Sequence record: MW218148.1
Reading direction: 5' to 3' (one strand)
DNA: 64,000 nucleotides
Shown here: positions 30,905 through 61,381 of the stretch, piece after piece
Position numbering within the stretch: the first letter of the stretch is position 1
Layout of the letters: the number at the start of each line of letters is the position of its first letter
Made by a program: the position numbers and the translations under genes
The notes under the pieces: model-generated
The model's input: the letters and a program-made list of their open reading frames with translations, nothing else
The model's database searches: none
Told to the model about the DNA's origin: nothing

Positions 30905-31168
30905 GTGATCGAAATGAATAATAAAAATAAAATAGACTCAAAAATAGATATGGACGCTTTTAAAAATGCTATGACACAGGCTAAATCAAATCTTAATAAT
31001 CTTATCAAAATTGCAGATGTAGATGGCCATAATGAAGAGATTAATAGACTTAAGAAAGAAAACGAAGAAATGCATCGTTTTCTTTTTAAGTTATATCAAG
31101 AAGATGAATATGATAAAGATGAATTAAAAAAGATACTTTATAAAGACGTAGTTAAAAAATTCATATAG
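30905..31168 (+). CDS. Small coiled-coil accessory protein (C-terminal tag)
   Basis: 87 aa, GGAG RBS, ends DVVKKFI. Confidence 0.7.
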   Translation: MIEMNNKNKIDSKIDMDAFKNAMTQAKSNLNNLIKIADVDGHNEEINRLKKENEEMHRFLFKLYQEDEYDKDELKKILYKDVVKKFI

Positions 31169-31170
31169 GA

Positions 31171-31359
31171 GTGATAACAATGCCTTCAAGAGTAGAAATT
31201 AATAGTTCTGGAATGATTATAAGTACAGTTGGCGTTAAAATGGATGATCAAAATAAAAAAATGAGAGAATTTATTTTAGATATCAAAAGAACTGGAAATT
31301 ATAATCAAAAAGATTTAGATGAATTAGTAAAAGAAATTGTTAAAGATAATTTTAAATAA
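31171..31359 (+). CDS. Small accessory protein (C-terminal tag)
   Basis: Ends EIVKDNFK; AGGAG RBS (start could be ATG 31180). Confidence 0.7.
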   Translation: MITMPSRVEINSSGMIISTVGVKMDDQNKKMREFILDIKRTGNYNQKDLDELVKEIVKDNFK

Positions 31360-31361
31360 GG

Positions 31362-31829
31362 ATGATAAATAATATGTCAAATGAAAAAGTAATTGCTAAA
31401 GAGTTAACGTTAGATCAGAAGATTAGACTATTTGAACCTAAAGTAGATGAGGAAACTTATTTAAGACCACTTAGTCAAGTTGATGAATCATTTTATAATG
31501 AAGTTATTAAAGATGATTTAATTGAAAGAATTAATAATGAAGACCATAAGTTTGAAGATAATTTTGATTACCATATATTTAAGAACGGTCCAATACAGTT
31601 AATTGGTTTTATTTATAAGTTCGAATTTAGTGATGAAGCATCTAATGTTAAAAAAGAGAAAGTTAATGAAGGTAATATATACTTTGGAAGTTTTATACTA
31701 AATAATAAAAATAAGAAAGATGATTCATTATATTATCTTCAAGTTGATAGTAGTTTAGTTGACTTTAAGTTAGTGGAAAACAAGAAGTATAAAGAATTTG
31801 GTAGAAGTCTATTCAAATTAGTTAAGTAG
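31362..31829 (+). CDS. Hypothetical protein
   Basis: 155-aa ORF in a tightly packed array. Confidence 0.7.
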   Translation: MINNMSNEKVIAKELTLDQKIRLFEPKVDEETYLRPLSQVDESFYNEVIKDDLIERINNEDHKFEDNFDYHIFKNGPIQLIGFIYKFEFSDEASNVKKEKVNEGNIYFGSFILNNKNKKDDSLYYLQVDSSLVDFKLVENKKYKEFGRSLFKLVK

Positions 31830-31831
31830 GA

Positions 31832-32119
31832 GTGATAATAATGGGTGAAGAAATCAAAGATTTAATAAGTAAAATAAATAGCATGAAACTTGAGTTTAAA
31901 CAGATGGATTACAAATTATCTAGTGATACACAAGTTAATTATTTTGAAATAGAAAAAATTAATGAATATATTAAACTTCTACATGAAGATAATCAAAGTA
32001 TCAAAAAAGAAAATATATTGTTAAAAGAAGCCATTGTATCTATTGCTAAGCATGTTGATTTTAAAAGTGAAAGTATTAAGAAATTAACTAATGAAATTAT
32101 TGATAATAATTTCAAATAA
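31832..32119 (+). CDS. Small coiled-coil accessory protein (C-terminal tag)
   Basis: Ends EIIDNNFK. Confidence 0.7.
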   Translation: MIIMGEEIKDLISKINSMKLEFKQMDYKLSSDTQVNYFEIEKINEYIKLLHEDNQSIKKENILLKEAIVSIAKHVDFKSESIKKLTNEIIDNNFK

Positions 32120-32138
32120 CAAAGTGAAGTGATTCTAT

Positions 32139-32414
32139 TTGGATAATGAAAAAAGTTTAATTAAGCGTATGGACGAATTAGAAGAACGTACTAGAATGAA
32201 TGAAATTAAATTAAATACTATGAGAGATAATTACCATTATTTAAATGATATTATAGGTACATTAATAAATAGAATAGAGAATTCTAATCAAACTAATGAA
32301 AAGAAATTGGATGAGGTTAGATTAGAATTAGTTCGTCTTTCTAATGAATTAAATTCACATTCTAAGGTAACTAAAAAGTATTTAAAGAGTTTCATTAAAG
32401 ATAATCTTAACTAA
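32139..32414 (+). CDS. Small coiled-coil accessory protein (tag variant)
   Basis: TTG start; ends SFIKDNLN. Confidence 0.65.
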   Translation: MDNEKSLIKRMDELEERTRMNEIKLNTMRDNYHYLNDIIGTLINRIENSNQTNEKKLDEVRLELVRLSNELNSHSKVTKKYLKSFIKDNLN

Positions 32415-32702: not shown

Positions 32703-32930
32703 ATGAATCCAGATATTAATTTTAATGATTATGGTTCATCTATGGATGAACTATATTCAAGAATACAACTTAGAGCAGCTCAACAGGTAGAAAAAGACAT
32801 AGTGGGAGATACTGAAAAAGACTCTCTTGAAAAAGAAGTGAAAGAACTTAGAGAACTTCTTTTTGAAGTAGCTAAAAAGTATGATGTTAAAGAAATAAAA
32901 GAATATTTAGTTAGAAAGAATATGAAATAA
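32703..32930 (+). CDS. Small coiled-coil accessory protein (tag variant)
   Basis: Ends KEIKEYLVRKNMK. Confidence 0.7.
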   Translation: MNPDINFNDYGSSMDELYSRIQLRAAQQVEKDIVGDTEKDSLEKEVKELRELLFEVAKKYDVKEIKEYLVRKNMK

Positions 32931-32956
32931 GGATTTAAGAAAAGAGTTGAATAAAA

Positions 32957-33148
32957 TTGACTGATGAAGATTTAGATTTTTTTGAAGCAATTGGAAAGAC
33001 AACCAATGAAATTCTAGATGAAAATAAAAAATTAAAAAATGATAACTTGAGACTTAAAGAATTGATATTAGATATTTCTAAAGATCATAATATAGTAGAC
33101 AAACGAATAACTGAAATAAAAGTCGATCTAGCAAAAAATAAGAGGTAA
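32957..33148 (+). CDS. Small coiled-coil protein
   Basis: 63 aa, TTG start; shares LKxxNxxLKELI with its neighbours. Confidence 0.6.
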   Translation: MTDEDLDFFEAIGKTTNEILDENKKLKNDNLRLKELILDISKDHNIVDKRITEIKVDLAKNKR

Positions 33149-33170
33149 TGACATTAATTGTCATTACCTC
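33142..33170. terminator. Hairpin terminator between convergent genes
   Basis: GAGGTAATGACA-ttaat-TGTCATTACCTC perfect inverted repeat. Confidence 0.75.
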
Positions 33171-33183
33171 AATTATACTGCTT

Positions 33184-35430
33184 TTAGTCATCATATTTAT
33201 CTTTATATTCATAATAACTATCAAATTGAACTTCTAAACCTGAGAAAGCTGAAATGAATCCCATTCTGCCTTCCATGTTAATATTCTCTATATCTTTAAT
33301 ATCAACATCCGGTTCTCTATAATTAAAATCTTTATTCTTATCTATAAATATTCTAATTCTATTTTCATTCTTAATAATTTTAATGTACTTGTTATTAACA
33401 TCTAATGGTACATGATTAGTTAAAAATAATTGTTTTTCTGATTCATCTTGGAATATTTCTTTAGGTTTTCCAAATACTTTATCAATTTCATAGAAACCAG
33501 TTTTCATTATACGATCAGGATCTGTCATTACATCTTCATCATTAAGATCAAAGTAAGGAACATCCCAGTTTTCTTGTTGAGATGCTATCCAAAGCATATA
33601 CCCGGAATTGAGTTGAGTATTATAATCAAATATAATGCCAGCTCCTCCAGTTTTATTTTTATTGATTAGCTTAAATGTCATAATGTAATTTTTAGGGAAT
33701 TTAAAGTTCTGACTATATACATAATTAAGTGAATTGTCATCAAACTTTCTAGTTCCGTCTAAGAAACTTATATATCCGTAATTACCTAATGATTGTTTAG
33801 TTATAGTCTTATCATAAAATCCAGTGTATGTTTGAGTTTCTACAGGAAATGTACCATATGATCTTAATGCAACTATCATAGGATTAAAGTAAATTCCTGA
33901 TCTACTCTCATCGAAATAAAAATCAGAACCATCAGGATTTTTAAGTGAATAATTATACTCCAACTCAACGTTATACCAATCCTCTTTAGTCACTATAAAT
34001 GTGTTTTTAAATTCTTCATGACTAATTCCTGCAATTTCAAATTCATCCAAACTAACTTTAATTATCTCATTTGGATCAACATTATCCGCAAAGTCTGTTA
34101 ATTTAACTTCTATTTCCATCTTTTTAATGTTCTTCATATTGTACATCATATATTTAAGATAAGATTTTTGACCTTGAGTATTATAGTTTCTATTACCTGA
34201 AGTGAAAATATTCTCTACTTTTTTGACTTTTCCAGTAGTTGATGTCAAAGTTATATCATATACTAATTTAGCTGTAGGGTTATTATTATCTTTAAAATCA
34301 GTTGAATATCCCATATTGAAAGCAAAGAAGTCATAATTCAATAATCTATTGATATTCATTCTAGGATTTTCATTTTCATCATCTAAAGTTATTTTAACAA
34401 ATGATGCTGAGTTACCGTCTGTTTTATCTGATTTACTTAAGATATCTGCCTTAACTTCATAAAGACCTGTGTCTTTATTAAAACTTACTGAAGATAATCT
34501 TGTGGATTCTAAATTGGAGTGACTTACATCACTGTCATTAGCTTTTCTCAAGTCAAATATTGCAGTAGGTGCTTTAAATTGATAATTCTCTGTAGCATTA
34601 ATTACATTGAAACCTTTTCGATCAGTTATTTTTAATTTAGATGTGCCATTTTGTAAAGGAGCAAATAAATATTTTTCTCCCGGTTTAAAATACATTTTAC
34701 CTTGAAACTTACGAGAGAAACCTTTTTTATAGAATAAATGAGGTAGAGTTTTTAATCCATCATTATTAAGTGTAAATGGTTCTACTAATTCTTTGTTATC
34801 AGTATCAGGTCTATAGAATTTATGCTCATTAACTCTATATCTTTCTCTTAAATATCTATCTGAAGTAATATTCTCTAATTTATTCTCGAATTCTGTTTCT
34901 GGTACAAAAGGTATTATTTTACCATCATTATAGCTTGGAACGATTCTATCTGATTTTTCTTCAGTACTCTTAATCATGTGTTTGAATATAGCCTTTGGAT
35001 TATTCTCAGTACCCAATATTTCTTTTTCAGTGTTAATTATTTTATTTAAATTATTAATAACTGTCTCTGGGAATATAAGTACTGTATCTGTATTGAATTG
35101 ATCAACTGTCTGCATATCGTTTACAAATAGTAATAAATACCATAAATCAGTAGTACCATATAATTCGTTAGATAAGTATTCGGGTCTGTAATGGTATGAC
35201 TTAGACAAAGTAAATTCTATTAAATCACTCTTAAGTACATTTTCATATTTCTTTAACATTGGTAAACTGAACACTGCTTGTTTTTCAAATAAATACCATT
35301 CAGATATATTGTTTAATAATATTTTATTATTCTTGGAATATTCTATCTCAGAAGACATCTCAGGGATATTTTCTTTACCCATATTGTTATTTCCTACGTC
35401 ACGAATAAGCAATTTATATTTCACTTCCAT
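33184..35430 (-). CDS. Baseplate wedge-like protein (T4 gp53/LysM-like N-domain) with PA14-like and lectin-like C-terminal domains
   Basis: YRPEYLSNELYGTTDLWYLLLFVN; FQGKMYF..G.KYLF; C-terminal concanavalin-like GAGIIF...IRIFID...GRMGF. Exact start uncertain. Confidence 0.6.
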   Translation of the reverse strand: MEVKYKLLIRDVGNNNMGKENIPEMSSEIEYSKNNKILLNNISEWYLFEKQAVFSLPMLKKYENVLKSDLIEFTLSKSYHYRPEYLSNELYGTTDLWYLLLFVNDMQTVDQFNTDTVLIFPETVINNLNKIINTEKEILGTENNPKAIFKHMIKSTEEKSDRIVPSYNDGKIIPFVPETEFENKLENITSDRYLRERYRVNEHKFYRPDTDNKELVEPFTLNNDGLKTLPHLFYKKGFSRKFQGKMYFKPGEKYLFAPLQNGTSKLKITDRKGFNVINATENYQFKAPTAIFDLRKANDSDVSHSNLESTRLSSVSFNKDTGLYEVKADILSKSDKTDGNSASFVKITLDDENENPRMNINRLLNYDFFAFNMGYSTDFKDNNNPTAKLVYDITLTSTTGKVKKVENIFTSGNRNYNTQGQKSYLKYMMYNMKNIKKMEIEVKLTDFADNVDPNEIIKVSLDEFEIAGISHEEFKNTFIVTKEDWYNVELEYNYSLKNPDGSDFYFDESRSGIYFNPMIVALRSYGTFPVETQTYTGFYDKTITKQSLGNYGYISFLDGTRKFDDNSLNYVYSQNFKFPKNYIMTFKLINKNKTGGAGIIFDYNTQLNSGYMLWIASQQENWDVPYFDLNDEDVMTDPDRIMKTGFYEIDKVFGKPKEIFQDESEKQLFLTNHVPLDVNNKYIKIIKNENRIRIFIDKNKDFNYREPDVDIKDIENINMEGRMGFISAFSGLEVQFDSYYEYKDKYDD

Positions 35431-35446
35431 TCATATTTTGTTATAA

Positions 35447-35458
35447 TAAATGGATGTT
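35447..35458 (-). promoter_or_regulatory. Putative late promoter AACA-N6-TA
   Basis: AACA TCCATT TA on the minus strand. Confidence 0.5.
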
Positions 35459-35510
35459 ATGATACTTAATTTGTAGTTAATAAAAAATTAAAAAACTCAA
35501 CTAATATTTT

Positions 35511-35523
35511 AAATATATATTAT
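35511..35523 (+). promoter_or_regulatory. Putative early promoter
   Basis: AAATATATATTAT. Confidence 0.6.
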
Positions 35524-35590
35524 TTTAATGAGATTGAGATTAATTATCTTGATACTCAAAAATTTTTTAATTACAAGGAGAGATTTGGAT

Positions 35591-37135
35591 ATGGCAAAAG
35601 TAAAATACTCACAAACAAAATTATTGGTAAGAGCAGCATTTAGAGCGGATGAAATCATCAACGTAGTTGGTGACGGTGGGATCGGTAAAACACAAATGAT
35701 GAGAGATATTGCTGAAGAAGATAATATGAATTTCATCACTATCGCTGCAAACAACCTTAAAGAAGGGGAATTATCTTTACCAATGTTATCACAAAAAGAT
35801 AATGAAGTTATCTATGCTCCAATGGACAAAATTAAATTAGCTAACACATTATTTGAGAAATACAAAGAATATCAAAAAGAAGGTGGAAAACAATATTCAC
35901 GTAAAGATCTTTCTTTAAAATCTGTTGATGAGTTAAAAGAAATTTATGTTAAATTAACTGGTAAAGATGTTCTTGATTACTATGAGGATACTCATGAAAA
36001 CTACGTTAGTAAAGTATTTAACAAAGCTAGAGTTAAAAATGTTAAATACAATAAGAATGATTTAATGAAAAAATCATTTGATGAGTTAAATGAAATCTTT
36101 GTAGAATTAACAGGTAATGAATTAAGAGATAAAATTGGTAAAGGTTTCTATATTAAAGAAATTTTAGAAGCAGTTCCAAGACCTTATACTCTATTATTCA
36201 TTGATGAAATTGGACGTACTGATCAACAAGTACAATCAGAATTAATGAACTTCTTATTAGAACGTCAAGTAAATGGTTATCATTTACCACCTAATGTTAA
36301 GATTGCATTAGCACAAAACCCATCTTCAGATATGCCTGGTTTTGCTGATACAGATTATGCTGCTACATCTATGGATAACGCAGTAAGTTCTCGTATTACA
36401 TTTGTACACATGGTTCCTGACATTGAAAGTTGGGTAGACTTTGCTACTAGATATAAAGGTGATACAGATAAACAAAATATTCATCCATCTATCGTTGAGT
36501 TTGTAACTGAAAAAGAAAGTACTGAATATTTATTCAGACCTCAAAAAGAAGTTAATAAAGACTTTAATGATACTAATCCACGTTCATGGGAAATGATTTC
36601 TAATATGTTATATGTATTAGAAGAGGATGATTTATTCAAATTCTCTAATAGAGAAGAAGAAAGAAAGAAAAAGAAAGACACTTTACAGTTCTTTACTGAA
36701 GGTAAAATTAATAGTGATTTAGCAAACTTATTTGTTAAATTCTATATTGAGAAACAAGCTAAATTACCTCGTCCAAGTGATATTTTATTTGAATATGATA
36801 AAGGTAAAATGGTTCCTCGTAAAGAATTATCTAAACAACATATTGAAGTTATTGAAAGTCAATCAACTATTAGACAGTTAACACTTAAAACTTCAATGAT
36901 TAACTACTTAAAAAATAATCCTGATTTAGCAAATGAAAAAGTTATTCAAATTGCTGTAGAGGCTTTATTATTAGGTAAAACAGAAACAAATGCTACACCA
37001 ATTCGTTTAATTTCTAGATTATCAGAATCAAACGAAGAAACAGATCAAGATTTATACAACAAATTCACTGATAATGAATTATATAGTGATAGAGCATTTG
37101 CTTTATACGAGCAAATGGTAGGAAGTTTAGGTTAA
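35591..37135 (+). CDS. MoxR-family AAA+ ATPase
   Basis: GDGGIGKT Walker A, LLFIDEIGR Walker B, SSRITF, NPRSWE; AAGGAG RBS supports ATG 35591. Confidence 0.85.
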   Translation: MAKVKYSQTKLLVRAAFRADEIINVVGDGGIGKTQMMRDIAEEDNMNFITIAANNLKEGELSLPMLSQKDNEVIYAPMDKIKLANTLFEKYKEYQKEGGKQYSRKDLSLKSVDELKEIYVKLTGKDVLDYYEDTHENYVSKVFNKARVKNVKYNKNDLMKKSFDELNEIFVELTGNELRDKIGKGFYIKEILEAVPRPYTLLFIDEIGRTDQQVQSELMNFLLERQVNGYHLPPNVKIALAQNPSSDMPGFADTDYAATSMDNAVSSRITFVHMVPDIESWVDFATRYKGDTDKQNIHPSIVEFVTEKESTEYLFRPQKEVNKDFNDTNPRSWEMISNMLYVLEEDDLFKFSNREEERKKKKDTLQFFTEGKINSDLANLFVKFYIEKQAKLPRPSDILFEYDKGKMVPRKELSKQHIEVIESQSTIRQLTLKTSMINYLKNNPDLANEKVIQIAVEALLLGKTETNATPIRLISRLSESNEETDQDLYNKFTDNELYSDRAFALYEQMVGSLG

Positions 37136-37211: not shown

Positions 37212-39137
37212 ATGAACGATAACAGAACTATTAAAGTAATTAGAAAAGAAATACTTGATGAAGTACAGGATTCAATCGTAAATGAAAGAAGTTTGGATAA
37301 AAAGAAATTAACTAAATTGGGTGAGGAATTAATTGAAAATAGTATTTTTGTGTTGTATACTTCTGATGTTGATATTTATGGAGTAATGTTAATGACAGTT
37401 GAAAAGATTATTGATATTGATGTACCTGAACCAACTTTCTCTGTTTTTGATGAGGATAAAGGATATAAAATTGGTATTAACCCAGTGTTAATGGCTACAA
37501 TGGTAGATAAAGATGAAGAAATAGTTTCTATGTTCCTGCATGAAGTTATCCATGTAGCTCATTCACATTTAATTGAATTTAGACTTTTAAGAAATAAAGA
37601 AGATTCTCAATTAAAAATGTTAAGTCATTTAGGTATGGATTTATCTATATTTGAAATTGAAGAAGATTTTAGATTAGGTAAAAGAGATGCAAATACTAGT
37701 AAACAAGTTTTACCTGAAATTGCACCTAACGTAGATAAAGTTGAAAAGTATATTCGAGACAAATTTAAAAAAGATGAATTTAGATTAGCTCATGACGAAG
37801 GTTCACATTATTATATTAAGAAATTAGTTGACATCTACAAAGAAAATAACCAAGAAGACTTATTTGACTCTATGGGTGAACAAATACAACAAATGATTCA
37901 AGAGTCTTCTGATAAACAGAATCAACGTGATGAAGATTCTTTAAATGATGAAAATGAAAAGCTAAAAGAAATGTTAAATCAATTAAAGGAAATTGAAGAT
38001 AAAAATGAATTATCTGAAAAGTTAGAAGATAATAAAATTGAAAAAGAAGAAATTGATAGTTTCGAAGAGAAAGCACAAGACTATATTAATAAACTTGATG
38101 AATACAATCAAAATGATGAAGAAACTAGTAATGACACTGAAAATCAACAAAAGATAGAAGAGAAGATGAATGACTTACTAGAGTCAATGAAAGATAATTC
38201 TTCTGATAATGATTTTGATAAAGGTAATAATAGTGAACTATCAGACAAAATTCAAGAAATGAAATCTGATATACTAAATCAAATGATTCAAAATAACATG
38301 CAACAAGGTTCTGAAGGTATGCAAGGTGATGGCGGTGGAATGCAAGGAGGACAAAATGTATCTGACATGGGTAGTAATATGACTATGTCTTCTTCATTAG
38401 AAGGAAGTTCTAAATATGCAGATAAGTTTGACTCTAATCCACTTGAAGGTGATGCGACTGAAGAAAGAATGAAAGATCAATTATTTGACTTATTAGAATC
38501 AGCTAGTAGTAATAGTCGTGGCGATACTCCTGCTCATATTAAAGAACAAATTGAAATTCTTAAGCGTAAACCAAAAATCAAATGGCAAGATTATCTTAAA
38601 GCTAAAGTTGGTAAAAAGCGTTCTTCTAGTAGAAAGACTATATTAAGAAGAAATAGAAGACAACCTTATCGTAGTGATGTAAGAGGTTCTTTACCGGGTA
38701 GAAAATTAGGTAAAGTGTTTGCAGCTATTGATACTTCAGGATCAATGAGTAGAACTGAGATTGAAGAAATTATTGCTGAATTATATTATATCAGTAGTGA
38801 TATGAAAATTGATTTAGTATTAATGTTCTTCTCAACAGATGTTGAAGAAGTTGTAGAAGTAAATAGACCTAATCAATTTAACGACTATGTAATGGGTCGT
38901 GGAGGAACTTACTTCACTTCAGTATTTGAATTCTTAAATGACGATGAAAATAAGAGAAAATATGAAGTTAATAAAGATGATATACTTCTATTCTTCTCAG
39001 ATGGTTTTGGTGAAAGAGAAGTTGATTATGGTGTATTAAATGACGTTATCTGGGTAATCACTGAGGATGAAAATAATCTTTCAGTTGTTGAACCAAAAGG
39101 TAAAGTATTAAAACTAGAAATTGATCATAAAAGATAA
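37212..39137 (+). CDS. vWA-domain protein with N-terminal HExxH metallopeptidase-like domain (MoxR partner, DUF2201-like)
   Basis: LHEVIH; MIDAS DTSGS, GGT, FSDG; acidic linker; adjacent to the AAA+ gene. Confidence 0.85.
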   Translation: MNDNRTIKVIRKEILDEVQDSIVNERSLDKKKLTKLGEELIENSIFVLYTSDVDIYGVMLMTVEKIIDIDVPEPTFSVFDEDKGYKIGINPVLMATMVDKDEEIVSMFLHEVIHVAHSHLIEFRLLRNKEDSQLKMLSHLGMDLSIFEIEEDFRLGKRDANTSKQVLPEIAPNVDKVEKYIRDKFKKDEFRLAHDEGSHYYIKKLVDIYKENNQEDLFDSMGEQIQQMIQESSDKQNQRDEDSLNDENEKLKEMLNQLKEIEDKNELSEKLEDNKIEKEEIDSFEEKAQDYINKLDEYNQNDEETSNDTENQQKIEEKMNDLLESMKDNSSDNDFDKGNNSELSDKIQEMKSDILNQMIQNNMQQGSEGMQGDGGGMQGGQNVSDMGSNMTMSSSLEGSSKYADKFDSNPLEGDATEERMKDQLFDLLESASSNSRGDTPAHIKEQIEILKRKPKIKWQDYLKAKVGKKRSSSRKTILRRNRRQPYRSDVRGSLPGRKLGKVFAAIDTSGSMSRTEIEEIIAELYYISSDMKIDLVLMFFSTDVEEVVEVNRPNQFNDYVMGRGGTYFTSVFEFLNDDENKRKYEVNKDDILLFFSDGFGEREVDYGVLNDVIWVITEDENNLSVVEPKGKVLKLEIDHKR

Positions 39138-41354: not shown

Positions 41355-41418
41355 ATAAGTGGATCATGTTAATATGATTCACTTATATTTAAATTTTATA
41401 ATAGGAGATGAAAATGAT

Positions 41419-50710: not shown

Positions 50711-50720
50711 AAATTGTATT

Positions 50721-50733: not shown

Positions 50734-50802
50734 AAAAATGAGATAATGAATTAATATAATTCATTATCTCTATATTAATTTAATTAGGAGAGTGAAAAGG
50801 AT

Positions 50803-51417: not shown

Positions 51418-51437
51418 ATACTTAATAGGAGGTCAAT

Positions 51438-52085: not shown

Positions 52086-52094
52086 AGGATAGGA

Positions 52095-52730: not shown

Positions 52731-52785
52731 ATCAATTAACTTTCTTTTATATTAATTAATATGATGGAAGTGAGTTGAAAAATAA

Positions 52786-53565
52786 ATGTCTGATAATATT
52801 GAAATTGATTTGATATCACAAATTAATGATATGATGGAAGAATATAAAATGTTAGTAAAATTTAAGGATAAAATGGAAAAGAAAGAGGTTCAGTTAGAAC
52901 ATCGTATAATGGACTTAACTAAAAATCTAAAATATCCTAAGCATACATTTGTATCTAACATGGAGGCTAATATCATATCTGTAGAGAAAGAAATTAAGGA
53001 CACTATTATGCAAATGAAAAATGTTAAGAAAGATATTATAGACTTAACTATGAAAGCACAGAAAATGTCTATTGATGATGAATCAGAAGATAATTACAAA
53101 GAGCTTGCTAAAAATGTTCTTAATCAACTTAATACAATGTCTAATAAAGACATCTTAAATAGTATGATAGAACCAGAAGATGATACTAATGAAGATGATG
53201 ATTTTATTGGAGAATTAGATAGTAAGTTAGCTGAATTGGATGAAGAAGATAAAATGATTAATAAAGACTTAGATCGTAAAGAAGAGTTAAGTCAAGAAGT
53301 TAATGATCTTGATCAACAAGATTTATCATCTATACTGAAAGTTTATAAAGGTACTTTACAATTCTTCGTCATGGGAGATGAAGCGGACGAGTATGAATTA
53401 TTAGTCGCTGATATGGATATGAATATTATAGAAGAAGATGATCTTCAAGATGAATATCCAGAATTATTCACTATGACTAGAGATCTAGTATTTGAAGATG
53501 TTGAAGGTAGAGATGATATAGTTAAAGATGAATTCGGAAACTTATATCAAAAAGCTGAATTTTAA
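52786..53565 (+). CDS. Acidic hypothetical protein with N-terminal coiled coil
   Basis: 259-aa ORF, GGAAGTG RBS. Confidence 0.75.
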   Translation: MSDNIEIDLISQINDMMEEYKMLVKFKDKMEKKEVQLEHRIMDLTKNLKYPKHTFVSNMEANIISVEKEIKDTIMQMKNVKKDIIDLTMKAQKMSIDDESEDNYKELAKNVLNQLNTMSNKDILNSMIEPEDDTNEDDDFIGELDSKLAELDEEDKMINKDLDRKEELSQEVNDLDQQDLSSILKVYKGTLQFFVMGDEADEYELLVADMDMNIIEEDDLQDEYPELFTMTRDLVFEDVEGRDDIVKDEFGNLYQKAEF

Positions 53566-53573
53566 TTAAATTT

Positions 53574-53608
53574 TACCCATAATATATTATTATAATGTAT
53601 TATGGGTA
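53574..53608 (+). terminator. Hairpin (terminator or regulatory)
   Basis: TACCCATAATA / TATTATGGGTA. Confidence 0.55.
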
Positions 53609-53629
53609 TTTATTATAGGAGGAAAGAAA

Positions 53630-53977
53630 ATGGGATTTGAATTAAGTATATATGGAATTAATAAAAGTAAACAAAGAGAATTACAATGGTATCTTGATTA
53701 TGGTAGGTATGAAAGAGAAAAACACCATGTTTTTGAATTGTATTTAAATAGACCTAATGAACTTTATAAAGTATTTTCTTCTAAATCAAAAAAGAATCAA
53801 AAGGATGATGAAATCATTGTTATTTCTAACGAAGATTTAAGAGAGTTAATGATTAGTGATTTAAGAGAAGATAATTTCTATTATGATTTATCTGATTATT
53901 ATAAACTAATGTCAGAAATAACTAAAATTGATAGAGTTAAAAATGACTTCTATCTTATATTAGATCCATCATTTTAA
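53630..53977 (+). CDS. Hypothetical protein
   Basis: 115-aa ORF, AGGAGG RBS. Confidence 0.7.
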   Translation: MGFELSIYGINKSKQRELQWYLDYGRYEREKHHVFELYLNRPNELYKVFSSKSKKNQKDDEIIVISNEDLRELMISDLREDNFYYDLSDYYKLMSEITKIDRVKNDFYLILDPSF

Positions 53978-53994
53978 TAAAGAGGAGAATTATT

Positions 53995-54129
53995 ATGTTG
54001 AAAAGATTATATGAATTATTATCTAAAAAGAGATATGAAAGTAAATTAAAAGAATTTATGTTTACTTATCATGACCATGAACATCTTAATGAAGTTCATG
54101 AATACAATAAAAAGGAGAATGATAAATAA
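53995..54129 (+). CDS. 44-aa hypothetical protein missed by the ORF track
   Basis: AGAGGAG RBS; MLKRLYELLSKKRYESKLKEFMFTYHDHEHLNEVHEYNKKENDK; its stop overlaps the next ATG (TAATG). Confidence 0.65.
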   Translation: MLKRLYELLSKKRYESKLKEFMFTYHDHEHLNEVHEYNKKENDK

Positions 54130-54539
54130 TGCTATCAGAATACAAATTAAACTCAAGTAAAGAAGATATCAAACAAGAATTAAGAAATTATGGATTCAGA
54201 AAAGATTCTTATACTAAAGCACTGATATACAGAAAGAGAGTAACTAATCCTAATGATGTTTTATTTATAGAAGCTGAAATTGTTATTGAAACTAATTCAA
54301 ATTTAGTTAAGTTAAACTACTATGACAATAAGCATAATAGATTTAATCCATCCAATGAATCTGATGAAGTTAAAAAAGGTTTATCTATATTGGATGACAT
54401 GAAGGAAAAAGGACTTTTAGTTGAACCTGAATTGATTCAAAATGAAGAAGAAAAAGAAGTATTAGATAGATTAGCTCAACAACGTGAAGAAATGGAAAAT
54501 GGACAAGTTGCACCAAATCCAGATAATGATGAAAATTAG
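54129..54539 (+). CDS. Hypothetical protein
   Basis: 136-aa ORF, AAGGAG RBS. Confidence 0.7.
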   Translation: MLSEYKLNSSKEDIKQELRNYGFRKDSYTKALIYRKRVTNPNDVLFIEAEIVIETNSNLVKLNYYDNKHNRFNPSNESDEVKKGLSILDDMKEKGLLVEPELIQNEEEKEVLDRLAQQREEMENGQVAPNPDNDEN

Positions 54540-54542
54540 AAT

Positions 54543-54555
54543 AAATATATATTAT
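54543..54555 (+). promoter_or_regulatory. Putative early promoter
   Basis: AAATATATATTAT followed by a hairpin at 54565-54594. Confidence 0.6.
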
Positions 54556-54623
54556 AAAAATGATATCTCAATACTATTAATTTAGTATTGAGATTATTAT
54601 GTCGGGTTAGGAGATGAAAAATA

Positions 54624-55418
54624 ATGGGAAAAGAAACATTTTTAATTAAAGAAGATGACAGGTTAATTGATAATGATATAGACTTTGTAAGTAGATGCCA
54701 ATATACTTCATATATTTTATCAAATATCTTTTTCGAAAAATTTAAAAAAGATATATACTACACTCGTCTAACACAATTTTTTGATGATATGTATCTATCT
54801 AGTAAATTTGGTTTTTATGATGAGGATCGTGAATTAAATATATTCAGTCAGCATATATTTGAACAATTCTTATTCAAAACTTCCAATAGTGATAATCAAT
54901 TTGGACAATTTAGAGTGGATATAAACTTTCAACCTGTTGAAGAAACTTTTATGTTAAAGATTTATTTTGAAAGTGACACAGAAGAAGAATTATTTGATAA
55001 ATTCACAGATGGATATTTAGGGAAATATAACGTTTTAAATCAAGGTAAAAGTCCTAATATTTATTATAAGGATAAGGAACGTCTAATTCAAGAATTAAAA
55101 GAATTAAATGAATACACAAAACAAATAGGACATTATGATCCTAAAATTGATCATACGAAAATAGTAGATTATCTGATAGAGGAAAAAGAATATATCATAA
55201 TGAATTTGATATACCAAATTCATTATATACCATTAATGACTCTTTATGAATTATCTTCAATGCATGATATTGAATTCTTTATAGAATTCAATAATGGATG
55301 GTCAATAGAATTAATAAATATAAAAGACATTATTGAAAAAGATGTTAATAAACTATTTATGAGATTTAAAACAGAAAAAGATGCAAGAAACTATAAAGTT
55401 AAAAAGGGGTTTTCTTAA
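54624..55418 (+). CDS. Accessory paralog-family protein (C-terminal tag)
   Basis: Ends KTEKDARNYKVKKGFS. Confidence 0.75.
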   Translation: MGKETFLIKEDDRLIDNDIDFVSRCQYTSYILSNIFFEKFKKDIYYTRLTQFFDDMYLSSKFGFYDEDRELNIFSQHIFEQFLFKTSNSDNQFGQFRVDINFQPVEETFMLKIYFESDTEEELFDKFTDGYLGKYNVLNQGKSPNIYYKDKERLIQELKELNEYTKQIGHYDPKIDHTKIVDYLIEEKEYIIMNLIYQIHYIPLMTLYELSSMHDIEFFIEFNNGWSIELINIKDIIEKDVNKLFMRFKTEKDARNYKVKKGFS

Positions 55419-56200
55419 TGGGAAAAATTAATAAATACTACACTAGTAAAGCTGAAGAAGGATTTATGGAATTGACTTTTGATGAAGAAGAAACAAAATA
55501 CTTTGACTTTAAGTGGAAAGTCTTAAGCGAATTATTCGCTGAAATGCAGTTAAAACATAATAAAAGATTTTTCATAACTCAAGAAGAGTATGATGATGAT
55601 GATGGTTTATTTGGTATTAGTTTAGACTTTGATGCTTTTCCTACAGTGAAATACAAATACAAGGGTAAAACAAACAAAATGGAAATTCTCCTATACGCTA
55701 CAATACGTTTTAGCCTAAAAGAAGAAGACGATAACTATATCAAGTTTAAGGTTATCCCTGTATATAATAATAGTGTGATAGGTAATCGATTATTTAATAA
55801 GAGATCTGGTATATTTGGTGAAAAGAGTGGAGAATTAAATTTACCGCATAGCTTTAATAAAGAAATTATCTCTCGATTTTTAAAATATTATAAAAGTCAT
55901 ATAAGAAAAGGGAAAAGACCTGTAGAAATCAAAGATGATTTACACAAGATATTTAAAGATACAAATAAAACAATCTTTGAATTACTAGATCAAATACAAG
56001 ACCATTCGGATATTGAATTTCTTATATCACCAGATTGGAATTTTAGTGATAAAGAAAAAACAAAAGAAGAAGGCTTTAGTTTTGAAGAAGAATATGAAAA
56101 GTATATCAGTTTAGATGAATTTGATGCTGATGCATATTTTAGAGAAATAACTGATGAGAAAGAAATTAGAAATTTAAAAATTAATAGACATTTTAAATAA
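55418..56200 (+). CDS. Accessory paralog-family protein (C-terminal tag)
   Basis: Ends YFREITDEKEIRNLKINRHFK. Confidence 0.75.
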   Translation: MGKINKYYTSKAEEGFMELTFDEEETKYFDFKWKVLSELFAEMQLKHNKRFFITQEEYDDDDGLFGISLDFDAFPTVKYKYKGKTNKMEILLYATIRFSLKEEDDNYIKFKVIPVYNNSVIGNRLFNKRSGIFGEKSGELNLPHSFNKEIISRFLKYYKSHIRKGKRPVEIKDDLHKIFKDTNKTIFELLDQIQDHSDIEFLISPDWNFSDKEKTKEEGFSFEEEYEKYISLDEFDADAYFREITDEKEIRNLKINRHFK

Positions 56201-56216
56201 AAGGAGAAATAATATA

Positions 56217-56975
56217 ATGGATATAAATAAAAGTGGTAAAAAATATTTTTTATGTAAAGTAACAGATGAATTAATTACAGTTAATGATTTATCCATATAT
56301 GGTGTAGATAAAGATTATTTATATCTTCCACAATTAATTTCTAATTTACAAGTAAAAAATAATGAAGAAATAAGTATAACTTCTGAAGAAATTGTTGGTA
56401 CAGATGATGGAGGAACGAATTTATGGTCAGGGGTTATGTCATCTAATAGTACTTTCCCAACTATGGGATATAGATTTAATAATGAAAAGTCAATGGATAT
56501 ACTTATCTTTGACTTTGATATTATTTTCAACGAAGTAATAGAAAATGAAAACTATTTAAAAATTAAAATTGATCATGCTTATAATATAGGTGTAAATGCA
56601 AAGCTTTTTAATAAAGCAATTAGTGGTATATTAGATGAAGATAAATCTTTAAAACTACCTTTCAAAACTCCTATATCTCATATGGACAGTTTAATATCAA
56701 ATTCTGAAAATAATGAAGTTTTGCAACAAATATTAACTGAAGTAAATAGATCTATATTAGAAGTTTTATCACAGATTAGGGATCAATTCAACATAGAATT
56801 CTATATATCGGATGGATGTTTCTCACATATAACGTACGTTGATAAAAGAGATCATAGTAGTATAAATAAAAATTACTATAATCTATTTGATGAATACGAA
56901 ATGTCTGGAACATTTAAAGAAATTACTAATGAGAAAGACATTAAATCATATTTAGTGAAGCATAATTTTAAATAA
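56217..56975 (+). CDS. Accessory paralog-family protein, tandem duplicate A
   Basis: Clearly alignable with 56989-57738; ends YLVKHNFK. Confidence 0.8.
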   Translation: MDINKSGKKYFLCKVTDELITVNDLSIYGVDKDYLYLPQLISNLQVKNNEEISITSEEIVGTDDGGTNLWSGVMSSNSTFPTMGYRFNNEKSMDILIFDFDIIFNEVIENENYLKIKIDHAYNIGVNAKLFNKAISGILDEDKSLKLPFKTPISHMDSLISNSENNEVLQQILTEVNRSILEVLSQIRDQFNIEFYISDGCFSHITYVDKRDHSSINKNYYNLFDEYEMSGTFKEITNEKDIKSYLVKHNFK

Positions 56976-56988
56976 AAGGAGAATTATA

Positions 56989-57738
56989 ATGGCTATAGAT
57001 AAAAAATATTTTTTAAGTAAAATAACAGATGAATTAATTGAAGTTATTGACCTTTCCAAATATGGTGGAGTCGAAGATATTGCATATCTCCCACATTTAA
57101 TAACTTCATTACAAATAAAAAATAATGAAGAAATAAAAATAACTTCTGAAGAAATTGTTGGTACAGATGAAAATGGAAAAGAGTTATGTTCAGGTGTTAT
57201 GTCAGCTAGTAATATTTTTCCAGTTATAGCATATAGTGTTAATAATAAAAAGGCAGCGAATATACTTATCATTGACTTTGATATAATTTTTAACGAAGTA
57301 ATAGAAAATGAAAACTTCCTAAAAATTAAAATTAACAATGCTTATGATATGGGCATAAATACAATGCTCTTTAATAAAGTAATCGGAGACATATTAGATG
57401 AAGAAAATTCTTTAAAAATACCTTTTAGTTTACCTGCAGTTCATATGAGAGATCTAATACCAAATTCTAAAAATAATAAATTTTTACGAAGAATATTAGT
57501 TGAAGTAAATAGAGAAATATTACGATCTTTATCACAAATAAGAGATCATTTCAATATAGAATTCTTGGTATCGGACGCATGTTTCTCACATATAGTTTAT
57601 GATGACAGAAGAGATAGTGATGATATAGATGAGGATTACTATAATCTATTTGATGATTATGAAATATCTAGAGTATTTGAAACGATTACTGATGAAAAAG
57701 TCATTAAGGAATACTTAGTGAGGGATAATTTTAAATAA
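56989..57738 (+). CDS. Accessory paralog-family protein, tandem duplicate B
   Basis: Shares ITSEEIVGTD, DFDIIFNEVIENEN, CFSHI with A; ends YLVRDNFK. Confidence 0.8.
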   Translation: MAIDKKYFLSKITDELIEVIDLSKYGGVEDIAYLPHLITSLQIKNNEEIKITSEEIVGTDENGKELCSGVMSASNIFPVIAYSVNNKKAANILIIDFDIIFNEVIENENFLKIKINNAYDMGINTMLFNKVIGDILDEENSLKIPFSLPAVHMRDLIPNSKNNKFLRRILVEVNREILRSLSQIRDHFNIEFLVSDACFSHIVYDDRRDSDDIDEDYYNLFDDYEISRVFETITDEKVIKEYLVRDNFK

Positions 57739-57794: not shown

Positions 57795-60530
57795 ATGAAA
57801 ATTAAAAGATTAAAGTTGACAAATTTTATAGGCATCTATGCAGGAATGGGTTTAAAAGAAGTTGAGATTGATTTTAGCAAGAGTAAAAATAATATGATTG
57901 TGCTTCTTGGCGACAATGCTTCAGGCAAGACAACAGTTATGTCTAACCTAAACCCATATAGAGAAACTAATGATCAAAGAAAAACTATTATATTGGAAGA
58001 TGAAAAAGGTATAAAAGAGATTGATTATATTAAGGGTAATGATCTCTATGAAATTAAACATCATTATGGTAAAAACAGTTCACAAAACAAATCATTCATC
58101 AAGAAGAATGGTGAAGAACTCAATGAAAATGGTGGTATTAAATTATTCAATGAGATAGTCGATAAAGAGTTAGGTGTGTCTAAGGATTACTTTACGGTTG
58201 GTCGTCTAGGAGATAATGTAAGTAACTTTATTGACTATACTACAGGTGATAGAAAGTCATATATTAATAAATTTGTACCTAACATCGATAGATACTTAGA
58301 AGCTTATAAAGTTGCTAATGAAAAATTAAGAGTTATTACTAAGGATTTAAAATCACTTAGATTTGACTTAGATAAATATAAAGAATTTGATGAGATTAAG
58401 AAAGAGAAAGAAAACTTAGAAACTCTTATTGAACAGTTACAATCTGATCTTGATGAAGCTAATAAATATAAAACAACTAATGAAACTAAGATGAATTCTA
58501 TTATGGAAGAGAAGTATAAAGATATTCATCCTACTGATTATAAAAATAAATTGACTTCTGAGATTAATGAACTTAATCAAGAATTGCAAAGAGAAAAGAA
58601 ACTTAAAGAAGAAAATGAAAATTTAAGTAAATATACTATTGAGTCAGCTAATGAAAAGAAAGATAAAATTGATTCTATATTAAATAATACTAATAATGAA
58701 TTAACAATGGCTAAAAAGGATAAAGAATCAAATCAAGATAAATTAGATGACTTAATTAGTAGAAAATCTAAAATAGAGTCTCGTATGAATGCTATTAAGT
58801 TCAATGAAGATTATGACGCTTCAGATGAAATTGATTCTATTCTTCAGGGTTATAAAGATGATTTGGAAGGTATTAAAGAAGAATTAGATATTTCCAGAGG
58901 ATCTTTTGTAAGTGAGTTTGGATTACAGATTAACGATAATGTTAAAGAAGACTCATTAAAGCTATACGTAAATAGTTTCATTAATAAAATTGATGCATTT
59001 AAAGAATTTATTAATGATAATAAATTTAAATATAGCGATATCGATGGTGAATTTGAATCTGAGATTAAAGAAAATATTGACAAAATTTCTATGAACCAAG
59101 AAGAACTTAAAGGGTTAAGTGATAAACTCAATCAAATTAAAGGCAAATCTTCATTATTAAATATCTTAGAGAAAGAAGATCATGAACACTATAATGAATG
59201 TGTATTTGTACCTTTAGTGGCTGACTTTAAAGAAAATGAATTTGATTCAATCTCAGATTTAGAAGACAAATCTAAAAATCTATATAGTGAAAATCAAAAA
59301 TTAGAAGAAGAAAATAAACTATTATATAATCATATAACTCTACTAAATAAATATAAAGATTTATTGTCAAGTAGATTAGAGATGATAGAGTATATTGGTT
59401 TTGAAATTATTGACATTGACAGCATTCACGACATATTCAGTAATGGAAGTACATTCTCTAATGAAATTAATACACTTGAATCATTATTAAGAAAAACAAA
59501 TGAAATAAGAACTAACGAATACAATAGAGACAAATTAACTATTGATCTTGAAAGAAAAGAAAACGGTCTTAAAGAAGATTATTCTAACAAAAAGATCTTA
59601 TCTCAATATAAAGAAGATAAAGATGAATTAGTTAAAGAAATAGATAAAGTTAACATCAAGATAGGTGAAGTAAGTAATAATCTTAATTATCTTAATGAGC
59701 GTAAAGAAAAAGCATTAACTAACTTAGGTATTATTAATGAATTTATTAACTTAACTGAAAAATCAGAAGAGATTAAAAATAACATCAATGAGAAACAAAA
59801 ATCAATTGATGAGGTTAATGAAGATTTAATTAAATTAAGTGATTTATATAATCTTAACCAGCAGTCAGATAATAAAATTCAGTCTATCAGAGATAATTTA
59901 ACTATGAAGAAAAATGATTTAGAGTCAACTAAAGAAAAATTCTTTGCAGTTAATTCTATCATTACTAAAATTGATGAGATTGAATCTGTTTTATGGAAAT
60001 ATACTATGGTAGTAGATTCACTTAACCCTAAGAAAGACTCTATACCATTAATATTCATCACTAATTATCTTAAAGATATTGCTGTAAGTACTAATGAATT
60101 ACTTTCAGTAGCTTATAATAATTCATTTAAAATTGACTTTGACTTAACGGATAAAGATTTCTTTATTAATGTTTATAAAGGTAATGGAACTGAGTTGAAA
60201 GATATTAAAGAAGCTTCTCAAGGAGAAACAGCTTTAACTAATATTAGTTTATCTTTATCATTATTAAACAAAGTTTCTCAAGAATATAATATACTTTATC
60301 TTGATGAAATGGATAGCACTTTAGACTCTAATAACAGAAGAAGATTTGTTGATGTTATTGATAGACAGATTGATTTAATGGGATTAGAACAAGTATTCTT
60401 AATCAGTCATAATGATGAATTCTATAGTGCTAATATTGATTTAATCTTACTTAAAGGTTATGAAAGTAAAATTGATATCAATAATAAAGAAATGATGAAA
60501 GACAAAAATGTATTATTTAAAGTAAACTAA
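57795..60530 (+). CDS. SbcC/Rad50-like SMC ATPase
   Basis: LGDNASGKT, long coiled coil, ASQGE signature, YLDEMDSTLD, LISH. Confidence 0.9.
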   Translation: MKIKRLKLTNFIGIYAGMGLKEVEIDFSKSKNNMIVLLGDNASGKTTVMSNLNPYRETNDQRKTIILEDEKGIKEIDYIKGNDLYEIKHHYGKNSSQNKSFIKKNGEELNENGGIKLFNEIVDKELGVSKDYFTVGRLGDNVSNFIDYTTGDRKSYINKFVPNIDRYLEAYKVANEKLRVITKDLKSLRFDLDKYKEFDEIKKEKENLETLIEQLQSDLDEANKYKTTNETKMNSIMEEKYKDIHPTDYKNKLTSEINELNQELQREKKLKEENENLSKYTIESANEKKDKIDSILNNTNNELTMAKKDKESNQDKLDDLISRKSKIESRMNAIKFNEDYDASDEIDSILQGYKDDLEGIKEELDISRGSFVSEFGLQINDNVKEDSLKLYVNSFINKIDAFKEFINDNKFKYSDIDGEFESEIKENIDKISMNQEELKGLSDKLNQIKGKSSLLNILEKEDHEHYNECVFVPLVADFKENEFDSISDLEDKSKNLYSENQKLEEENKLLYNHITLLNKYKDLLSSRLEMIEYIGFEIIDIDSIHDIFSNGSTFSNEINTLESLLRKTNEIRTNEYNRDKLTIDLERKENGLKEDYSNKKILSQYKEDKDELVKEIDKVNIKIGEVSNNLNYLNERKEKALTNLGIINEFINLTEKSEEIKNNINEKQKSIDEVNEDLIKLSDLYNLNQQSDNKIQSIRDNLTMKKNDLESTKEKFFAVNSIITKIDEIESVLWKYTMVVDSLNPKKDSIPLIFITNYLKDIAVSTNELLSVAYNNSFKIDFDLTDKDFFINVYKGNGTELKDIKEASQGETALTNISLSLSLLNKVSQEYNILYLDEMDSTLDSNNRRRFVDVIDRQIDLMGLEQVFLISHNDEFYSANIDLILLKGYESKIDINNKEMMKDKNVLFKVN

Positions 60531-60543
60531 AGAAGGTGATTAC

Positions 60544-60741
60544 ATGTTAAATAATACAAATAAACTAAGTGAGATGGAGATAGTGCAGAAATTCAATAAA
60601 ATGCACTATCAGCTCACTATAAATAACGGTGAAGTATATACTGAAGGTCCTGATATTGATTTATTAAATGAAATAAAGAAAGACATAGGAATAATGGACA
60701 AAAGAATAAAGAATAAAAAAATAGTGGAGAGTTTTAATTAA
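60544..60741 (+). CDS. Hypothetical protein (tag variant IVESFN)
   Basis: 65 aa, GAAGGTG RBS. Confidence 0.65.
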   Translation: MLNNTNKLSEMEIVQKFNKMHYQLTINNGEVYTEGPDIDLLNEIKKDIGIMDKRIKNKKIVESFN

Positions 60742-60752
60742 ACATAATTGAG

Positions 60753-61064
60753 GTGATTCCCATGTTTAATAATCGAGAAGACATGTTTAAATACTTTGAG
60801 GTATACTTATTGGAAAGAAAATTAAATGATCGTATGAGAAGTGAGCATTATTTAGATTTTTTATTTGAACTTTGTGACGAATATGAAGTTAATATGGGTA
60901 ATTATATTAACACTCAAGGCATTATTAATGGTTTTGTGGCTTCAGGTGTTAAGGCTGACGTTCTTCATGGAATAGTTAAACTATATGATGATTTGGAATT
61001 AACAAAAGATAAATTATATAAAAGAACTAAATCGGACTTAATTAAATATACGATGGGAGGTTAA
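60753..61064 (+). CDS. Hypothetical protein
   Basis: 103 aa; GAGGTG RBS favours the ATG at 60761. Confidence 0.65.
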   Translation: MIPMFNNREDMFKYFEVYLLERKLNDRMRSEHYLDFLFELCDEYEVNMGNYINTQGIINGFVASGVKADVLHGIVKLYDDLELTKDKLYKRTKSDLIKYTMGG

Positions 61065-61069
61065 ATTAT

Positions 61070-61381
61070 ATGAATGAAGAAATAGTAGATAAAATGGATA
61101 ACTATAATAACAAGATTAAAGAGTTTAATATAATGCAGAATTACTTAAAAAGTTTACCCAAAGAAAATAAAGTATCTGAATATTTTCAGAATGATGTCTC
61201 ACTTAAAGAGATGACTTGGGCTAATGATGACTTAGGTGATTTATTTAAAGCTATTTTCCATCCTGAGTTCTATAAGGTTATGTGTCATATTATTAAAGAC
61301 TATGATATTGAACCTCCTGACTATATAAATAAATTAATTAAAAATGTTAAATTAAGAACGGTTACAAATACTTTTATGTAA
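61070..61381 (+). CDS. Hypothetical protein (tag variant VTNTFM)
   Basis: 103 aa, GGGAGG RBS. Confidence 0.7.
   Translation: MNEEIVDKMDNYNNKIKEFNIMQNYLKSLPKENKVSEYFQNDVSLKEMTWANDDLGDLFKAIFHPEFYKVMCHIIKDYDIEPPDYINKLIKNVKLRTVTNTFM

Follow-up and report, generated by a model that had tools for sequence, protein, structure and literature searches.

Why should proteins of very different length and sequence in one jumbo phage end in nearly the same few residues? The question is raised by a stretch of 64,000 nucleotides (hereafter the window), which corresponds to bases 124001-188000 of Staphylococcus phage vB_StaM_SA1 (SA1; MW218148.1, 260,727 bp, host S. lentus). An initial annotation of the window, made from the sequence alone, had listed 18 proteins with a common C-terminal peptide and proposed that this peptide is an address label set on otherwise different proteins. 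We found that the shared ending (called the tail below) is real, that it is longer than first described, and that at least 26 SA1 proteins, about 10% of the genes of this phage, belong to the tail family. The reading we lean towards is that the carriers are a lineage-specific expansion of one early accessory family, in which a terminal strand and helix form the constant part.

SA1 is an AR9/PBS1-like jumbo phage. Nine S. aureus jumbo phages (S6, PALS_2, MarsHill, Madawaska, Machias, PB50, LY01, UFV_DC4 and AH12) have ~80% DNA identity to it, and the next relatives, as judged by identity of the major capsid protein, are Listeria phage LPJP1 (50%), Bacillus phages AR9/PBS1 (40%) and Yersinia phage phiR1-37 (31%). 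Generalized transduction is carried out by this Staphylococcus group, and the group is considered for therapy. For comparison we used the whole SA1 record (283 open reading frames, ORFs), LPJP1 (251 ORF ends) and the first 246 kb of AR9 (310 ORF ends), with 435 discarded SA1 ORFs as a non-coding control for C-terminal matches; the array described below was compared with the syntenic arrays of four Staphylococcus relatives (PB50, PALS_2, MarsHill and Machias).

The 13 ORFs first listed as strong carriers do end in the heptads given for them (ends at 31359, 32119, 32414, 32930, 50011, 50710, 51417, 52085, 52730, 55418, 56200, 56975 and 57738). A strict 7-residue pattern is found at 15 real SA1 gene ends as compared to 0.06 expected from its internal frequency (17 in 76,928 positions), and at none of the discarded ORFs (0/435). 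Phe is the second-last residue (position -2) in 47 of the 283 SA1 ORFs, where 14 are expected (z 8.8), and this is the sole strong positional anomaly at SA1 C-termini besides a general excess of terminal Lys, which is also present in AR9 and LPJP1. With a C-terminally anchored matrix of 18 residues, scored leave-one-out (cut-off: the top 0.05% of internal windows), 26 of the 283 SA1 ends score above the cut-off as compared to 0.14 expected, 11 of them within the window, and the same scan of the related proteomes found none among the 251 LPJP1 ends, none among the 310 AR9 ends and no discarded SA1 ORF. Internal matches to the matrix are weak (the best has 15 bits and the others less than 10), whereas 18 terminal matches reach 12-32 bits. 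When C-terminal segments of 16 residues were compared by BLOSUM in a model-free test, 34 SA1 proteins fell into one connected component, with 171 pairs scoring at least 25 versus 5.3 for internal windows; the same test gave only ordinary 5-member paralogue families in LPJP1 and AR9. Chance and K/N/F-rich, AT-biased composition are therefore ruled out as the cause of the shared tail by the pattern, matrix and BLOSUM counts, as had been anticipated. Over half of all carriers lie beyond the window (at record positions 22679, 51357-54927, 60011-63290 and 80604-86284), and the tail is absent from functionally annotated proteins among the SA1 annotated genes, in agreement with what was first stated for RNR, polymerase, RNAP, helicase, SbcC and tail proteins.

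The tail has the approximate consensus h-[TS]-x-K-E-[YFI]-[KR]-x-x-h-V-[KR]-x-[NSG]-F-K-COOH, often after [YF]-F-x-E, so that the heptad first noticed is only the end of a motif of 18-24 residues with a T/S-x-x-E helix cap. Judging from the geometry of the consensus, positions -11, -8 and -7 (aromatic or aliphatic) would lie on one face of the helix, and Lys(-13), Lys/Arg(-10), Val/Ile(-6) and Phe(-2) on the opposite face; one of the faces presumably packs on the body, and the other would be either covered by an N-terminal hairpin or a conserved contact surface. Tails are basic and bodies acidic (mean net charge +1.5 over the last 18 residues and -3.5 per 100 residues, respectively). Two SA1 paralogues, at record positions 59569-59997 and 62149-62574, share 44% identity over 130 residues; the tail is of the standard form in one, and in the other it is shorter, with F-K shifted inwards by two residues.

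C-terminal amphipathic helices of the MinD/FtsA type target proteins to membranes, and the SA1 tail resembles them in having a lysine-rich helix at the extreme C-terminus. Unlike them, it has hydrophobic residues on two faces, and its hydrophobic moment does not exceed that of internal windows (mean 0.19-0.24 over the final 11-14 residues versus 0.26-0.30). With such an ordinary moment a membrane anchor is unlikely, and we did not retain this candidate.

The bodies were compared with the last 22 residues removed, using 52 array proteins of the four relatives and the SA1 members. At BLAST E<1e-4 the tail-less bodies fall into 13 array clusters (named c0, c1 and so on) and ~20 singletons. With tails removed, hhalign linked c0 with c4 (78%, E 1.9e-5, 191 collinear columns) and c6 with c8 (37% over 169 columns); since only these two cluster pairs are linked by profiles, the bodies look unrelated by sequence. 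The best hhalign alignments ran from N-terminus to N-terminus in 11 of 91 tail-tail cluster pairs versus 0 of 45 controls, and an N-terminal doublet of aromatic residues with a Gly turn after it is found in 11 of 24 carriers as compared to 21 of 193 other proteins. A search with an N-terminal profile retrieved only orthologues of its seeds.

We modelled two carriers from different clusters with AlphaFold, the one starting at window position 56217 (c0; carriers in the window are named below by their first base) and 50803 (c5). The model of 56217 has a predicted local distance difference test score (pLDDT) of 75.6 and a predicted template modelling score (pTM) of 0.79, with one good model of five, and contains a hairpin (residues 8-23), a beta-meander (52-120), a final strand (233-236) and a helix (239-251). 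The model of 50803 (pLDDT 77.8, pTM 0.79, four of five models consistent) contains an N-terminal hairpin (6-21), a beta-meander (58-136), a final strand (186-188) and a helix (191-200), and its residues 181-200 are the most confident part (pLDDT 85-93). The order of elements is common to both models: an N-terminal beta-hairpin, a helix, a 5-6-stranded beta-meander, a long helix, 1-2 strands, a short strand and a C-terminal helix. In both, the tail is the final strand plus helix and is predicted to be structured (pLDDT 78-93), which is the arrangement that the initial annotation had named as speaking against a label, namely the last helix of one folded domain. Foldseek found no relative in the PDB (best E 0.2). 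Against BFVD at E<1e-2, each model matches only proteins assigned to the clade (by sequence identity to the query or by a length equal to that of known members), including matches across clusters: the c0 model matches a c5 orthologue (E 1.5e-4), the c5 model matches a 206-aa protein at 17% identity (TM 0.62), and both models match proteins of 215 and 264 aa, the lengths of SA1 51438 and 54624. The description of the carriers as having different bodies holds at the level of sequence and probably does not extend to the two modelled clusters, which share a predicted element order and are linked by Foldseek. We consider it quite probable that the array proteins share common ancestry.

Carriers are found in arrays at record positions 60-63 kb, 82-86 kb and 173-182 kb. 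The one that is flanked by the RNA polymerase beta' gene and by SbcC contains 9 tail genes in SA1, 13 in PB50, 13 in PALS_2, 14 in MarsHill and 12 in Machias, and it is on this one array that variation in gene number between relatives was judged. Carriers are similar in length within an array and include within-array paralogues (49316/51438; 55418/56217/56989). Clusters c1 and c6-c12 have no counterpart in SA1; gain or loss of whole genes has altered the array since these phages diverged. Between orthologues (MarsHill-Machias and PALS_2-PB50), the ratio of nonsynonymous to synonymous substitution rates (dN/dS) is 0.26-0.31 for the last 20 codons, 0.55 for the bodies and 0.21-0.31 for untagged neighbours.

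Two further observations concern the array. Cluster c1 (160-163 aa; MarsHill 5339-7040 of the compared stretch, with counterparts in PB50, PALS_2 and Machias) is duplicated in three relatives, and its tail ends in [LH]-F-[KR]. Three tail-less genes (259, 115 and 136 aa) lie inside the SA1 array at window positions 52786-54539; they are kept in all four relatives examined, and their dN/dS is below that of the tail genes.

The early promoter of AR9 has the consensus AAATATATATTAT-(6N)-G (PMC5312081), and a near-identical motif has been reported upstream of 29 MarsHill genes (bioRxiv 10.1101/2020.12.14.422802). The pattern TATATTAT-N5-[TG]GA has 26 sites in SA1, mostly intergenic and on the plus strand, and 7 sites within the window as compared to 0.89 expected. 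All but one of the 26 carriers (25/26, the exception being 32703) are in plus-strand blocks behind a TATATTAT-N6-G promoter motif, so the motif scan bears out the view that carriers lie mostly behind predicted early promoters, and from these motifs we infer that the carriers are early genes. Perfect matches to the early promoter also occur on the minus strand inside plus-strand genes, at window positions 56573-56588 and 60278-60293.

We searched 1.84 billion representative proteins with a 30-column tail profile (E<=1e-3) and obtained 12 matches, each at the very last residues of a protein of 75-264 aa. The traced matches (8/12) are on genome records of the clade (SA1, PB50, Machias, MarsHill and PALS_2), and the remaining four, on short Logan contigs, probably belong to the same clade. 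A scan of IMG/VR with the tail profile gave no match, and a word-based search with the tail region alone gave just 2 candidates and was uninformative. Homologues in AR9 or LPJP1 exist for 86 of the 283 SA1 ORFs overall and for none of the 35 carriers, counting the weak ones. Searches of the carriers found nothing in Pfam, PHROGs, NCBIfam, PADLOC, PDB sequence profiles or PDB folds, and neither the family nor its ending is mentioned in the SA1, PALS2, MarsHill and UFV_DC4 papers or in the jumbo-phage comparative survey.

Given this family behaviour and the shared element order, we therefore prefer to see the tail as the invariable end part of an alpha/beta fold that the carriers have in common, and not as a transferred label. 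Tandem duplication would have produced the genes, in blocks headed by early promoters, and the bodies would have diverged past sequence recognition (dN/dS ~0.55) with both ends kept: at the N-terminus a weak beta-hairpin, approximately (K)-Y-[YF]-K-x3-4-G, and at the C-terminus 18-24 residues comprising a short strand, the T/S-x-x-E cap and a 10-13-residue helix that ends one residue past the near-invariant Phe. The conserved ends may serve as a constant 'handle' that closes the fold and probably offers a shared contact surface, to which Lys(-13), Lys/Arg(-10), Val(-6) and Phe(-2) would contribute from the same side of the helix, and the fast-changing middle would provide varied specificity for host targets in early infection. 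The short carriers (62-95 aa) would represent either the C-terminal piece on its own or remote proteins that have borrowed the tail element.

Several observations weigh against an expansion of one family with a common fold. The tail-less clusters are mostly without sequence or profile similarity, with full-length hhalign links only for c0-c4 and c6-c8, and the collinearity of weak hhalign matches shows no excess over controls. Cross-cluster Foldseek TM values are mostly 0.25-0.47, and the shared tail itself adds to the score. There are two models only, that of 56217 being the single good one of five, and they were compared by element order and confidence. The last 2-4 residues, the invariant Phe included, have low model confidence, and the conserved Lys/Arg/Val/Phe face of the helix would suit a partner better than a core. 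One and the same single domain cannot account for carriers of 62-95 aa and of 418-703 aa alike, and the expression class of the carriers is read from promoter motifs.

Some of these points suit a portable address tag or degron, that is, a terminal helix with F-K-COOH that would be read by one phage or host factor (for example a Clp-type unfoldase clearing early proteins on schedule, or a hub gathering them) and that has spread among separate bodies. The tail is the sole element common to more than 13 sequence-unrelated clusters, and it is under stronger purifying selection than the bodies; it occurs in full on a 75-aa protein (32703), and tail-like ends occur on proteins of 418-703 aa, all of which may differ in fold from the array proteins; its conserved basic and hydrophobic residues lie on one predicted helix face, and low confidence in the last residues is what one would see for an exposed ligand. 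We nevertheless consider such a tag unlikely, as the carriers, for the most part, look like products of tandem duplication within one family and agree in predicted topology and in an N-terminal motif, and as the ending can be shortened and shifted in a family member, which is seen in the pair at record 59569 and 62149. A label on unrelated bodies, as proposed at first, thus finds no support in the tandem arrays, the variation in gene number, the N-terminal motif, the shared element order and the Foldseek links. A tail that proved to have one common reader would be a rare case of a proteome-wide C-terminal code in a phage.

Known terminal signals allow a closer comparison. Encapsulin cargo-loading peptides and the capsid targeting sequence of phage T4 are terminal targeting peptides of capsid-like compartments, and like the SA1 tail they are short terminal peptides common to otherwise different proteins. 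In contrast, SA1 carriers are predicted early genes and none is among the few virion proteins reported for UFV_DC4, the proteome being shallow (PMC10638138). The C-terminal degrons of ClpX, C-motif-1 (ssrA) and C-motif-2 (MuA), are short, unstructured and work on any protein (PMC12723719). They are defined by lying at the free C-terminus, and C-motif-2 is basic with a hydrophobic end, similar in character to the last six residues of the SA1 tail, in which a basic run is followed by a small and a hydrophobic residue. In contrast to these unstructured degrons, the SA1 tail has 18-24 conserved residues, is predicted to form a structured strand and helix, and is found in what appears to be a single family.

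As a candidate reader, the initial annotation had pointed to a MoxR-like AAA+ ATPase (35528-37135, plus strand; Pfam AAA) and a vWA-like protein (37212-39137, plus strand; Pfam DUF2201), which follow an early promoter motif at 35516-35531 (plus strand) together with the genes 39221 and 41359. The SA1 RNA-seq paper places the ATPase, its ORF169, in the early class (PMC9414953). The pair has equivalents in AR9 (g028/g029), which is tail-less, and is therefore not specifically implicated; no reader can be named for a tag.

An arrangement by terminal register is also found in the two more distant phages. In AR9, g030, g031 and g034-g036 (226-415 aa; AR9 record 24579-30840, plus strand) form a family of paralogues with a C-terminal 16-mer in common. 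They immediately follow the AAA+ (g028) and vWA-zincin (g029) genes, a position matching that of SA1 39221/41359 behind their AAA+/vWA pair. In LPJP1, five tandem paralogues (32769-36976, minus strand; 210-348 aa) end in L-S-x-E-x-h-x-K-L-x-x-I-x-x-h-x-x-I. These families resemble the SA1 set in consisting of tandem paralogues whose C-terminal ~16 residues are similar and in the same register, and differ from it in having five members with alignable bodies, as compared to a 34-protein component with mostly unalignable bodies. Since ordinary paralogue families also end in register, a fixed distance to the stop codon is by itself no argument for a free-terminus signal. ORFs ending in Ile are frequent in LPJP1 (46 of 251, versus a background of 11%); a proteome-wide C-terminal code in this phage was considered and rejected, as the model-free test reduced the excess to the one 5-member paralogue family.

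A third reading, which we regard as quite unlikely, is that the tails, together with the N-terminal hairpins, pair paralogues into homo- or hetero-oligomers, in which the interface would stay constant and the outer surfaces would vary. Many co-expressed paralogues sharing one terminal helix with a conserved surface face would suit such assembly, as would the opposite charges of bodies and tails. The hydrophobic moment of the tail, however, is unremarkable, and nothing separates assembly from an intramolecular role. An exposed helix end could serve in docking or as a degron. Fairly improbable, too, is that the F-K-COOH helix is a true docking signal, read by one phage or host factor on ~30 early proteins at once, with the family fold merely its carrier; if it were so, a clade-specific code would address some tenth of the phage proteome together, for example to clear the early set on schedule or to gather it at one site.

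At the nucleotide level, identical tail residues share a codon in 0.68 of pairs as compared to 0.61 expected from genome codon usage, tail substitutions are conservative at the protein level (K/R, I/V/L, Y/F and T/S), and the 40 bases after the stop codon are unrelated between carriers. Together with the dN/dS contrast, the codon sharing and the unrelated downstream DNA bear out the early view that selection acts on the peptide and not on the DNA. Synonymous variation, which had been noted as well, is present at most tail positions and fails at Phe(-2), whose codon is TTT in 23 of 24 tails though TTC makes up 31% of Phe codons genome-wide (TTT 69%); the ending TTT-AAA-TAA is nearly uniform among tails, both at window positions 49955-57735 and record-wide. 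The synonymous rate (dS) is alike in tail and body in both pairs of relatives, so gene conversion is not the cause of tail likeness. A DNA-level cause (a conserved nucleotide element such as a promoter, terminator, ribosome site or recombination linker, recent gene conversion, or AT-rich codons near stops), for which the uniform TTT and stop context would speak, is very improbable and was rejected on the codon, flank and dS data, and no end matches among the non-coding ORFs or in AR9 and LPJP1, genomes that are equally AT-rich.

For an expansion of one early family there is a precedent: Bacillus phage G has a ~35-copy zinc-ribbon family, a lineage-specific jumbo-phage expansion (Iyer et al. 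2021, PMC7824862). Both are cases of dozens of paralogues in one phage lineage with a presumed role in host interaction. The SA1 family differs in its fold, in having no Pfam, PHROG, NCBIfam or PDB relative, in its extreme divergence with only the termini kept, and in its arrays, which are led by early promoters and, in the array compared, vary in gene number. Lineage-specific expansions in jumbo phages are thus already known, and the SA1 family is a new, large and unusually divergent example. It represents about 10% of the genes in this Staphylococcus jumbo phage group and is wholly unannotated. Being predicted to be expressed first, and evolving about twice as fast as their neighbours, its members have the signature expected of a host-takeover or counter-defence arsenal. 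Once recognised as a family, dozens of 'hypothetical proteins' can be studied together as a set with constant and variable parts, and the tail provides a simple sequence marker for members that homology searches leave unconnected.

Within the window, nine tail-family genes form the array, all on the plus strand, as are the other ORFs and motifs below. An AR9-type early promoter motif at 48838-48853 lies ahead of 48901, 49316 and 50036; the tail-family genes here are 49316-50011 (231 aa, c2; tail 49955-50008, 29.0 bits leave-one-out), which is a full-length paralogue of 51438 and whose orthologues in the four relatives keep the tail, and 50036-50710 (224 aa, c3 with 52095; tail 50654-50707, 28.1 bits). 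A second motif at 50726-50741 lies ahead of the genes at 50803-52730, namely 50803-51417 (204 aa, c5, modelled; tail 51361-51414, 20.7 bits), 51438-52085 (215 aa, c2; tail 52029-52082, 31.8 bits) and 52095-52730 (211 aa by ORF call, annotated start 52104, c3; tail 52674-52727, 22.4 bits). A third, at 54548-54563, lies ahead of 54624-57738, with 54624-55418 (264 aa, c4, with the hhalign link to c0; tail 55362-55415, 22.1 bits), 55418-56200 (260 aa, c0, a paralogue of 56217 and 56989; tail 56144-56197, 26.3 bits), 56217-56975 (252 aa, c0, modelled; tail 56919-56972, 26.9 bits) and 56989-57738 (249 aa, c0, 64% identical to 56217; tail 57682-57735, 26.0 bits).

Two short carriers bring to eleven the number of the 18 listed proteins that pass the 18-residue test, the rest being partial, weak or at chance level. 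The first, 32703-32930 (75 aa), has the full tail with Met at -2 (tail 32874-32927; 18.5 bits leave-one-out); its PALS_2 orthologue was retrieved by the tail profile among the 1.84 billion proteins, and it is kept in MarsHill and Machias. The second, 60544-60741 (65 aa), has a divergent tail (12.3 bits leave-one-out; p 9e-4 with an 8-residue matrix built, as for all p values given here, from the other members), and no counterpart of it is found after SbcC in PB50.

In three small ORFs the likeness is confined to the final 7-8 residues of the tail, and in one of them it is borderline. The last ~8 tail residues are present in 31171-31359 (62 aa; p 1.3e-5, 18-residue score -2.9), whose MarsHill orthologue has Leu at -2, and in 31832-32119 (95 aa; p 1.7e-4), whose end is kept in MarsHill and Machias; both are clearly beyond chance. 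The third, 32139-32414 (91 aa, Leu at -2; p 2.4e-3, with 0.67 such ends expected among 283), is borderline, and its end is conserved in orthologues.

The five proteins first listed with a minimal version of the motif fared unequally. Weak support was obtained for three, namely 60544 and the two that follow, all with ends kept in orthologues. The 703-aa protein at 39221-41332, in the AAA+/vWA operon, has a weak tail-like end (p 1.4e-3, 18-residue score -5.0) and no Pfam match, and the end K-[YH]-[LV]-[VA]-x-x-I-F-[IL] is retained in its orthologues of 689-740 aa. The 418-aa protein at 41359-42615 (start by ORF call, annotated start 41374; first placed at 41419) also has a weak tail-like end (p 3.6e-4; 1.7 bits, just below the cut-off), which is near-identical in orthologues; orthologues of these two proteins together span 395-740 aa. 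The other two are at chance level: 30905-31168 has p 1.1e-2, with 3.2 such ends expected by chance, and its K-F-[IK] end is retained in orthologues, and 61070-61381 has p 0.09 and an 18-residue score of -3.7.

Elsewhere in the window, two giant ORFs lie next to each other on the minus strand at 15673-21531 (1952 aa) and 21556-27618 (2020 aa), both annotated as tape measure protein. They are paralogues, 50% identical in their final ~220 residues and matching more weakly in other parts.

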